This document shows positions 50,901 to 53,736 of a DNA stretch of 64,000 nucleotides, piece after piece. Made by a program: the position numbers and the translations under genes. Source of the DNA: Chlorokybus atmophyticus. Lineage: Eukaryota; Plantae; Mesostigma and Chlorokybus algae. Below the pieces are notes generated by a model. It was not told the DNA's origin and searched no databases. It was given only the letters and a program-made list of their open reading frames with translations. Location of the stretch: the NCBI GenBank assembly GCA_009103225.1, contig RHPI01001737.1, forward strand, positions 570,286 through 634,285, written 5' to 3'. Each line of letters starts with the position of its first letter. Position 1 is the first letter of the stretch.

Positions 50901-53736
50901 GTTCGGCCTGCCGCCCTGGACCAGAGTCGACCAGATGATTAATGGCCTGTACAAGTACGGAAGCAGCATCATCAACCTCTTCGGCCTGTTCAAGTTCCCC
51001 AATCCTCTCGTTATCAACAACCCCAATTGCATCAGGTCAGTGCTTGCTGAATGCATGCCCTCGTTTCATTGACTGCATTGCATCGTTGAGTATTATCCTT
51101 GCTCAAGCTTGAGCAAGGATAACTATGAGAGTTGGAGCAGCACCTAGCAGGGCCTCGAGGCCTGAAGGCCGTGCTAGGTGCTGCTCTACACTCAGCAGAA
51201 GAAACGCTGATGGTTACTGCTGTTCTTGTACTCTGTCACAACTGCAGCCACGAAACATGACTCCAGTCAATACCATGTTGTCATGCAGGTGGGAGAGCGA
51301 TTTCGAGTTTGCGAGGGAGAGAGTGGCAGGCATTCACCCCACAACCATCAAGAAGGTGAGCGAGCTTCCTACGGACCTGGGTGGCAGTGGCCAGCCGGAG
51401 GTCGTGTCGTCGCTCGAGCAGGAGCTGGCGGCCGGTAGGCTGTACACGGTGGACTACACCGGCGTGGCGGACTACCTCAAGAGCATCGATCAGCCTAACA
51501 AGGAGCCGACGCTCAGGGGAGGCAAGTACGATCCCAACCATGACGTGCTCTACGCCCCGCGCGCCTTCTTCCGTGTGGACAAGGCTACGGGCGACCTCCT
51601 CCCTGTGGCCATCCAGCTAGAGCGTGCAGGCAGGCTGTACACTCCATCTGAGGAGAGTGCGCAGCTTGGCAATCAGAATAAAGAATGGACTCCTGCTAGG
51701 ATTCCTAATACCCCTCTGGGAAGAGTGTTTGCCCTCTGGATTCAGGCATCCAACTCCGCCCAGATCTGGCTGCTCTCTCAGCCACAGTCGCCGCTCACCA
51801 AGCTGGCCCTATGGGCTTTCTACTTTGCTGATTCCATCGAAGCCAGCAGAGGAACGTAAGCATTGGTACTGCTCATGTCATCACGTGCACCCTTTAACCC
51901 TCCTTCACCATGTGTGTGAGAACTGATTGTTTCTTTCCGCAGCGATGGGGAGGTGTGGCAGAGGCGCTACTATCTGCTGGGTGAGAATTATGCAGCGTTC
52001 GGGCAGCTGCAGCTGGGCGAGTTCAGCCTGGTCAAGGATGCCCTGCTCCAGCCGCAGGAGCGAGGCCCCTTCATCGCTTTCATTCGCATGGTGGAGAAGA
52101 GGTAAGCATGCTGTTGAGGATGGATAGCGGGTGAGGTTGAGCTATGGTGGAAGGACGCGTTTGTTCACTCGCACGCCTAGGTAGAGTTCATTCTAGTTAC
52201 ATGCATGTGATTAGGATTGCAAAGGCTAAGGGTTGTATGCATGCTGCAATGGAGCATGGGCGGTGGTGGTCTCAATGCATGTTCATTGCTGACATATGCA
52301 TGCAGCTTCCCAAGCAACATGCTGCTCTTCATGTCTGATAAAGCAGCAGGGGGCACTGGAGAGAGGGAGAAAATAAAGGTATGCATGTCAAAGCAGTAGA
52401 ATGGTGGCTTTGCAACATTGACGGTGTCGCTCGAAAACGGGCAGTATTGAAAAAGTGCTGCATGTGCTGCATGACAAGGCTTCAACTAGAGGTTGCGCTC
52501 CTTGCAGGAACTAATATGGGAGAAGTTCACCTCACGTGAGGTGCTAGAGAGAACTCAAGACAAGGTGAGGCAGACGCTGCGAGTTGAATGCACACGCTAA
52601 GTGTTGTGCCCAGCACACATGCGTCTGACGTTCACGTTTGCATTGCCTCTCAGTTCCCGGGGCAGCTCATTCGAGAGCTGGCTGCCAGCGTGCAAAGAGA
52701 CAAAAAGAACTTGGCCAAGAATGTTGAGAACTTCACAATCCGATACATGCATTACGTCCTTTATGGTACGATACAGAGATAAACATAGTCGCTGTTATTG
52801 GCTGCCTTGTGTGATGGCCGTTCCCAAGCTTTGCTTAACCCCCAGGTTTCGAGGACGACCCTGAGATTATGGAATTGTGGCAAGGCTTGGCTCAAGCGTA
52901 CGCTGCAAAGAGGGTACGTACATAGCTAATTCTGACCAACGTTTCATCATTGTTGTTACACTGTAACAATGTATGCACTCTTGTCTTTTCAACAAAGCAT
53001 GCCTTGATACGCAAATTTGTGGCAGGTGTTTCCCTTGGGTCTATTCGTCAACAACCGCACAGACCCTGTTGTTAACGGGCTGAAGTCCAAGTACGAAAAC
53101 TCAGTGCTGTTCCGGGACGTGGACTATCAACGCTACGACTTGACTAAGGACCGCTTCCTCGACGCTCTCATACCCGCCATGGGTGTGGCCGCAGTCCCGG
53201 GCGCTCTTTCGTTCCTGACATTCCTGCTTACAACCATACCAGGTTCATTTAAAGTCCCCGTGGAGGACCGGAACCTGCTTAGACTCACTGCCTTGGAGTC
53301 CATCCGGCTCCACACCCCTGTCAACCCCATCGCGTACTACCTGTCTGAGGACCTGACAGTGAAGATGGGCAAGAAGAGGGTCCGCTTCCCCAAAGGCACT
53401 CCTGCGGGCATTAACGTGTGGGTGGCATCTCAGAACAAGGCGCATTTCGACCTCGCTACGGCAAGCTTCAATCCTCACAGAGAGAACCTGGAGGGGAATT
53501 TCCTGAACTTCAACTCTGTAGGGGAGCAGCACCCCCAAGGCAGGCAGTGCCCGGGCCGCAAGATCGTTGAGATGCTGGGAACAGATGTGCTCCACGCTGT
53601 GCATAGTCGCGATGATGATGGTGCGGAGAAGAGTGGTGCTGATGTCGAGAAAGAGACTGTTGTCCTCGACAGCGGTGGTGATGGGATGCCAAGCACAGGG
53701 AGTGATCAAACGCAGAAGCGCGCTTTCTTTCGTTGA
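47947..53736 (+). CDS. Putative plastid-targeted fusion protein of about 1,050 aa: PLAT plus N-terminal lipoxygenase half plus atypical (CYP74-like) cytochrome P450 (copy 1)
   Basis: About 15 GT-AG exons in consistent phase. One junction next to the (CT)n/N gap is uncertain. Transit-like MAPVTCCLAPAATT...SRRSGFLAVPRS; PLAT end WFLKSVIIQD...YSFPVYSW. Plant LOX motifs YKYDV|YDDL...RPPLKPYPR, LPLDEDF, WESDFEFARERVAGIHPTTI, LYTVDY, LYAPRAFF, LLPVAIQL. P450 motifs LESIRLHTPV (ExxR), FNPHRE, FNSVGEQHPQGRQCPGR (Cys at 53548-53550). Confidence 0.85.
49367..50071. repeat. (CT)n microsatellite of about 700 bp in an intron, ending at an N; length unreliable
   Basis: Pure CT repeat from 49367 to 50071, followed by a single n at 50072. 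Confidence 0.9.

Follow-up and report, generated by a model that had tools for sequence, protein, structure and literature searches.

Chlorokybus atmophyticus, an early-branching streptophyte alga, carries two convergent copies of a gene in which the front half of a lipoxygenase (LOX) runs, inside one exon, into a cytochrome P450 (P450). Both lie in the 64,000-nucleotide stretch analysed here (assembly GCA_009103225.1, contig RHPI01001737.1, positions 570,286 to 634,285 of the forward strand), which we call the window and whose own numbering is used throughout. The LOX is cut off shortly before the residues that bind iron, and a decayed piece of LOX that takes up where the fused half leaves off lies head-to-head with copy 1. 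We favour, with a probability of roughly 0.6, the reading in which this junction is a real, inherited feature that began when a rearrangement split an ancestral LOX, joining its front to a P450 and leaving its back half as a separate, divergent gene.

The junction exon and the break in lipoxygenase numbering

The junction exon of copy 1 (51289-51855, forward strand) is one open frame with RNA joints at both ends. In translation it runs from a Trp codon (51290) to 51853 as 188 whole codons with zero stops, and its 3' end at 51855 lies two bases into a codon. LOX is read first and then WTPARIPNTPLGRVFALW..., the start of the P450 module; an earlier note on this DNA had described such a passage from LOX into non-LOX sequence with neither stop nor intron, and the 188-codon frame bears it out. 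The conserved LOX core (51289-51646) ends in LLPVAIQLERAGRLYTP and corresponds to about residues 340-450 of soybean LOX-1. A LOX profile, built in this analysis from seven LOXs, matches the exon over profile positions 129-254 (E 6.9e-29), the core accounting for 129 to about 240. In a sequence search, LOX chains of the PDB from bacteria, plants and animals align to exon residues 1-119, and Pfam Lipoxygenase (PF00305), on the exon alone, matches its first 50 residues at profile positions 191-242 (E 6.5e-5), slightly below the gathering score.

Behind the core stands a variable loop or linker (51647-51685; SEESAQLGNQNKE in copy 1, SSPKDEAQLGDGV in copy 2), in which 39 % of the nucleotides differ between the copies and two 6-nucleotide indels are both in frame; the length of the equivalent loop also varies among LOXs in the alignments. 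The last LOX residues, WTPAR (51686-51700), follow, reaching the profile end at 254 and aligning to WTLAK in the LOX of Chara braunii. The earlier note had LOX similarity ending at 51646; it extends 18 codons more, through WTPAR to 51700. In the remainder of the exon (51701-51855), about 51 residues open the P450 module, beginning with the proline-rich IPNTPLG, and neither a HMMER library search nor the LOX profile detected LOX similarity there. The exon contains neither an N nor a repeat.

Alignment to soybean LOX-1, which had been suggested as a means of fixing the breakpoint, sets it between 51700 and 51701, at the equivalent of K483 and 16 residues ahead of ligand His499. WTPAR (63763-63749 in copy 2) corresponds to soybean W479-L-L-A-K483 by way of the Chara LOX aligned to 7soj and 1f8n; the Chara protein has WTLAK at this site, after the variable loop behind ...IQLE.GG.VYT. 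This Chara braunii LOX (GBG92868.1; P0004) is unsplit, with 885 residues and a Pfam Lipoxygenase match at E 1e-122, and among the eight LOX matches it is the closest relative that also aligns to the PLAT-side exons (50189-50560 and 50752-50955), a match in keeping with a streptophyte-algal host. In the 7soj/1f8n alignment the His-x4-His-x4-His of soybean LOX-1 (H494, H499, H504) comes directly past the break, and the W479-K483 region opens the long helix that bears H499 and H504. The catalytic domain of soybean LOX-1 spans residues 147-839 and binds iron through His499, His504, His690 and Ile839 (PMC12715592). The break falls in the middle of this catalytic domain, away from any domain border. 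Asn694 is a further iron ligand of the soybean enzyme.

A six-frame profile search found neither an intact His-x4-His-x4-His nor any other Fe-ligand segment in either copy or any intron. Because the frame passes from W.LAK into the P450, meets no LOX exon and ends at the stop (53734-53736), the LOX module of the fusion is without Fe ligands, and the fusion polypeptide is predicted to be unable to bind iron alone. The earlier note had expected W.LAK and then HQLxxHWLxTH after the break. The ligand segment is indeed absent from the polypeptide, but W.LAK, in the form of WTPAR, is the last LOX element before the break.

The copy 1 gene is modelled as 47947-53736 (forward strand) and would encode a leader, PLAT, the LOX front and the P450. 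Exons from 50480 on are set by RNA joints, taken from spliced contigs of the runs X1 (2021) and X2 (2013), each from a different study, whereas the ATG (47947) is presumed and, like the upstream PLAT-like exons, was read by eye from sequence alone; searches with the spliced model took its exons one at a time. An exon piece at 50075-50401 holds the back part of PLAT (Pfam PLAT E 1.2e-4, 23.2-23.4 bits with the cut-off at 23, profile positions 61-108 of 117; Chara LOX residues 219-325), and nine open pieces from the 47.8-49.4 kb region, scanned with Pfam, gave no match. In the intron just 5' of this exon piece lies a (GA/CT)n microsatellite of about 710 nucleotides followed by a single N (49360-50072). 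The LOX exon before the junction exon (50760-51035; Chara LOX residues 327-389) is bounded by joints 50559/50760 and 51035/51289. Downstream of the junction exon, RNA joints and frame place six further P450 exons (51943-52101, 52306-52378, 52508-52564, 52654-52765, 52846-52913 and 53026-53736, all on the forward strand). The spliced contigs of X1 and X2 define nine introns, all GT..AG (50402-50479, 50560-50759, 51036-51288, 51856-51942, 52102-52305, 52379-52507, 52565-52653, 52766-52845 and 52914-53025, forward strand). One X2 contig has a non-canonical joint, CG..AA, that skips 183 nucleotides of the last exon (53189-53373), likely an assembly artefact of that run.

A single frame stays open from the PLAT exon via the junction exon and the six exons that follow to the stop at 53734-53736. 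RNA joints bring the LOX exon in (51035 to 51289) and lead out to the first P450 exon (51855 to 51943), and the LOX frame at entry to the junction exon is the P450 frame at its exit. RNA contigs lie on the junction exon at 51286-51558 and 51754-51855, and no RNA joint or loose end is reported within it. There is no in-frame stop for a stand-alone LOX product, and the first Met for a stand-alone P450 comes about 100 residues downstream. The open frame, the lack of inner joints and loose ends, the lack of a separate stop or Met, the in-frame indels and the same layout in both copies thus argue for continuity of the transcript over the junction.

A relic of the complementary half

The LOX segment that should follow the break is found elsewhere in the window, on the opposite strand and in decayed form. 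A tblastn search with eight LOXs gave an unexpected second match at 46049-45927 (reverse strand), the best being to Chara GBG92868.1 (residues 557-591, 54 % identity, E 2e-5). The 41-residue piece encoded there is recognised as Pfam Lipoxygenase (E 2.8e-6, 26.6 bits, profile positions 350-388) and exceeds the gathering score; directly upstream of it, in another frame, the sequence reads ...LSAQAYVVEMDTYTSSMR. Read through with an X at the break, the whole relic (45927-46099, reverse strand; about soybean residues 482-540), detected by tblastn, Pfam and the LOX profile alike, aligns without gaps to LOX profile positions 253-308 (30.3 bits, E 1.9e-8). It resumes at profile position 253 and the fused half ends at 254; the relic therefore begins where the fused half stops.

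The relic is broken by a frameshift or stop at 46049-46052. In soybean numbering it has Ser at 494 and Gln at ligand position 499, the His at ligand position 504 being kept; PH(F/Y)R has turned into PQFR, and homology stops abruptly past PQFRHAILI. A profile search found no LOX segment downstream of its end anywhere in the 64 kb. The relic lies about 1.85 kb upstream of the presumed copy 1 ATG (47947) and about 5.35 kb upstream of the copy 1 point equivalent to the window end in copy 2. We take these remains to mean that the complementary LOX half was once encoded within the window, beside copy 1.

This changes two statements of the earlier note. It had found no ligand motif in the copies or the window, which is literally true, no HxxxxH being present, but the relic (46099-45927) holds the next LOX segment. 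It had also concluded that the LOX module is a dead scaffold fed by an active LOX elsewhere; the polypeptide does lack any Fe ligand, but the conclusion overlooks the complementary half.

Two other candidates were rejected. Weak LOX-profile matches at 59184-60083 (forward strand; E 2-28) are not collinear and were set aside as noise, and a second-site duplication at the breakpoint, sought between the codons of WTPAR and those of LSAQ in the relic, amounts to 7 of 15 identical positions by eye and is not significant. About 0.8 kb past the truncation of the relic, an open reading frame (44842-45108, forward strand) has a weak match to a Tc5-transposase helix-turn-helix domain (PF03221, E 0.012).

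The P450 module and the divergence of the two copies

Measured from the junction to the stop of copy 2, the module has about 413 residues, as many as expected for a P450 catalytic domain that lacks its leader. The last exon matches Pfam p450 (PF00067) over profile positions 322-389 (E 0.0017; 17.6 bits, the cut-off being 22.8) and an NCBIfam P450 subfamily (E 0.0025), with a marginal match in the PDB to the DoxA P450 (E 0.11). In an atlas search with this exon, P450 clusters account for all 30 of 30 matches (best feature score 0.97). ESIR, FNPHR and G-R-Q-C-P-G, all in the last exon and invariant across both copies, provide the ExxR, PERF-type and Cys-ligand motifs. Counted back from the last-exon match, the junction lies near Pfam p450 profile position 30, at the proline-rich entry IPNTPLG, and the fusion therefore cost the P450 its N-terminal leader alone.

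The I-helix region reads AMGVAAVPG, without the acid-alcohol pair, and the Cys loop, which ends R-Q-C-P-G, is about 6 residues longer than canonical by our own count of the Phe-to-Cys spacing. Both features would fit a peroxide-rearranging P450. Together with ESIR and FNPHR, all read from the sequence, they liken the module to the CYP74 clan (AOS, HPL, DES, EAS). However, the Cys-loop insertion of CYP74 is typically 9 residues, and a missing I-helix Thr and a Cys-loop insertion are traits not exclusive to CYP74. CYP74 chains (AOS, HPL) were not recovered from the PDB with the last exon to E 1 or with a two-copy profile to E 10, and a word search with the last exon gave zero relatives. Because no sequence search retrieved a CYP74 enzyme, "CYP74-like" denotes resemblance here, not membership. 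An atlas search with the 50 post-junction residues gave no usable match, and an AlphaFold2 model of the last exon from a two-sequence alignment was unusable (mean pLDDT 33.8). In the presumed I-helix stretch, copy 2 is one Ala codon short, with GV-AVPG against GVAAVPG in copy 1 (53185-53190).

Copy 2 lies on the reverse strand. Its junction exon (63594-64000) is cut by the window end and stays open for at least 135 codons, and its P450 exons, collinear with those of copy 1, occupy 61732-63495 (stop 61734-61732). With 83 % protein identity between the junction exons, the collinearity of copy 2 and its alternative linker are as the earlier note had given them. Record 2 of the X1 contigs shows the copy 2 letters at both sites that distinguish the copies; copy 2 is therefore transcribed and spliced. 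The intron after its junction exon starts with GC (AG/GCAAGC; 63593, reverse strand) where copy 1 has GT, and would be a GC-AG intron if used. Its stop falls 37 codons earlier than that of copy 1, just past the last P450 helix, and the C-terminal tails differ.

Compared with each other, the copies have 79-92 % nucleotide identity in exons and 56-74 % in introns (26-44 % differing). Nucleotide differences reach 7.5 % within the LOX core (51449-51648), 39 % across the linker bin, 14 % past the junction and about 50 % in the next intron. By the Nei-Gojobori method, omega (dN/dS) between the copies is 0.34 in the LOX core (bootstrap 0.12-1.16; dS 0.16; 67 codons), 0.11 after the junction (50 codons) and 0.27 over the whole P450 part (0.20-0.37; dS 0.48; 436 codons, some of them past the earlier stop of copy 2). 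The copy 2 contig has 3 differences in 246 nucleotides of 51286-51531, as against 13 in 122 nucleotides of the preceding exon, and a gene-conversion tract between the paralogues may cover the region around 51286-51600.

Because the uneven, low dS points to gene conversion, the LOX-core omega is weak evidence, and selection on the LOX part is, within the window, only weakly shown. The earlier note held that the LOX half is kept under selection and that a dN/dS near 1 would speak otherwise; the estimate of 0.34 is on its side, whereas the bootstrap interval, which reaches 1.16 and so includes 1, leaves the claim weakly shown. Another line of evidence comes from the exons themselves. All LOX front-half exons read have their frame and splice sites intact, and the gene is transcribed. 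The contrast of these exons with the broken relic, presumed to be of equal age, would be stronger evidence than omega.

Origin, function and alternative explanations

The reading we prefer would begin with an ancestral full-length LOX of the Chara braunii type, broken within its catalytic domain just after W-x-L-A-K. The LOX front (leader, PLAT and the sequence to about residue 483) would have been joined in frame, with no intron between, to a P450 catalytic domain at its start, and the back part, with all Fe ligands, would have become a gene of its own, divergent from the fusion gene. Most economically, a single inversion would have exchanged the 5' parts of two divergent genes, a LOX and a P450, an event that would yield both chimeras together and head-to-head, one made of LOX-front and P450-body and the other of P450-leader and LOX-back. 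This two-gene block would afterwards have been duplicated as an inverted repeat, the arms of which span at most 45927-54184 and 61146 to beyond 64000. Both fusion genes would have remained intact, and the back-half gene beside copy 1 would have decayed to the relic at 46099-45927, where a transposon insertion may have removed the remainder of the gene. We infer both the order of these events and the single inversion.

As to function, the possibility we lean towards, at somewhat less than even odds, is that the P450-tethered front half pairs with the separate Fe-binding half to make a LOX, the hydroperoxide of which would be passed to the P450. The fuller proposal, in which a natural two-chain LOX unites fatty-acid oxygenation and hydroperoxide conversion in one heteromeric machine, arose by a single inversion and has one back-half gene serving two fusion genes, is a shade more tentative still. 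Several points weigh against the account favoured here. No listed RNA contig bridges 51559-51753, and the X1 depth table is empty over 51651-51753. The bootstrap interval of the LOX-core omega spans 1, and dS there is one third of that of the P450 exons. The change from W-T-L-A-K to W-T-P-A-R would put a proline at the opening of the ligand helix, which is not obviously favourable to re-docking of the other half, and the cut lies inside a single domain. A natural two-chain LOX was not found in the literature search, and the relic indicates that copy 1 persists without a neighbouring partner gene.

There are three other explanations. The LOX front half could instead be a dead targeting or scaffold arm (PLAT plus helices) for the P450 that never re-pairs, the hydroperoxide coming from a complete LOX elsewhere. 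The polypeptide without Fe ligands and the retention of PLAT speak for this, as do the degeneration of W.LAK to the proline-bearing WTPAR and the fact that copy 1 is intact and transcribed despite the loss of the adjoining back-half gene; in Arabidopsis, moreover, LOX and hydroperoxide-using P450s cooperate as separate proteins in a complex, according to PMC6627107. However, about 335 catalytic-domain residues are retained past PLAT, well above what targeting needs. We regard such an arm as rather unlikely, and a split, possibly two-chain LOX would seem at least as likely. A different suggestion treats the LOX part as neutral debris, left by a fairly recent rearrangement and supplying the promoter, start codon and leader to a P450 that alone is functional. 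The omega interval reaching 1.16, the almost neutral evolution of the linker and the lack of fusion relatives among 1.84 billion representative proteins, as for a young lineage-specific event, would be in keeping with it. Yet although the copies have diverged to a dS of about 0.5 (P450 exons) and by 26-44 % in the introns, all LOX exons read have kept their frame and splice sites, and no part of the junction exon is better conserved than the LOX core. Of the six copy 2 differences listed for the preceding LOX exon, four fall on third codon positions, and the relic, inferred to be of equal age, has suffered a frameshift, truncation and the loss of ligand positions. Neutral debris is thus improbable.

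An assembly artefact, either a misassembly that joined unrelated genes or a hidden intron or missing exon that would restore a normal LOX, is essentially excluded. Single Ns and long simple repeats nearby do mark an imperfect assembly, and the stretch of the junction exon that the RNA contigs leave unbridged would allow for one. However, two copies whose exons differ at 12 % of positions share the junction; the junction exon is free of N and repeat, and both of its ends are spliced as expected in the runs of two independent studies; and no LOX-like reading frame occurs in any intron. The argument against misassembly that the earlier note drew from an intra-exon junction shared by two diverged copies is upheld, the spliced exon ends, the matching frames and the in-frame indels all being in agreement with it.

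To our knowledge, the LOX catalytic domain is regarded as one indivisible fold, and known LOX fusions contain a complete LOX. Full-length LOXs such as soybean LOX-1 and Chara GBG92868.1 are like the fusion in PLAT and in residues about 340-483, with the L-P-V-A-I-Q-L strand and W.LAK. In contrast, they keep soybean residue 484 onward (the His499/His504 helix, His690, Asn694 and the terminal Ile), where the fusion has a P450 instead. The coral allene oxide synthase-LOX (PDB 3dy5, 2fnq; Koljak et al. 1997, cited in PMC10813956) is likewise a natural fusion of a LOX and a haem enzyme that uses LOX hydroperoxides, and the logic of product hand-over is likely the same. However, its LOX is complete, active and C-terminal, behind an N-terminal catalase-type haem domain, whereas here an N-terminal half-domain LOX precedes a P450. 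The fungal dioxygenase-P450 fusions (Ppo/LDS/AOS; PMC13049297) also have an N-terminal fatty-acid oxygenase, behind which a P450 at the C-terminus rearranges the hydroperoxide and needs no redox partner, but their oxygenase is a complete, unsplit haem peroxidase/COX-like domain and not a LOX. N-terminally truncated mini-LOXs such as wheat Mini-LOX III (PMC10847848) show that LOX activity survives the loss of N-terminal parts; mini-LOXs drop PLAT but have their catalytic domain complete on a single chain, unlike the mid-domain cut described here.

When the junction exon was run with HMMER against the 1.84 billion representative proteins, the 8 matches were ordinary LOXs aligned from residue 1 to about 122-137, and none spans the junction, a result that speaks against close relatives of the fusion; the 50-residue P450 start is too short to score in this library search, which makes it a weak test of that side. 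In the literature search we found no half-LOX-P450 fusion, no split LOX and no description of a Chlorokybus LOX or CYP74. The coupling of an oxygenase to a hydroperoxide-converting haem enzyme is already known; the half-LOX-P450 architecture is, by these searches, unprecedented.

Re-association of the halves would make this a natural fragment complementation of a large helical metalloenzyme. It would also be a new way for an early-branching streptophyte alga to couple the two opening steps of oxylipin synthesis, bearing on how the oxylipin/jasmonate pathway of plants was assembled. If the halves stay apart, a LOX front half would have been re-used as a non-catalytic module. In either case the locus would be a clean example of two chimeric genes from one rearrangement, with the decayed paralogue as an internal control for unselected sequence of equal age.

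The spacer between the two convergent copies contains a 398-nucleotide run of C with a single N (56416-56814), probably an assembly artefact.

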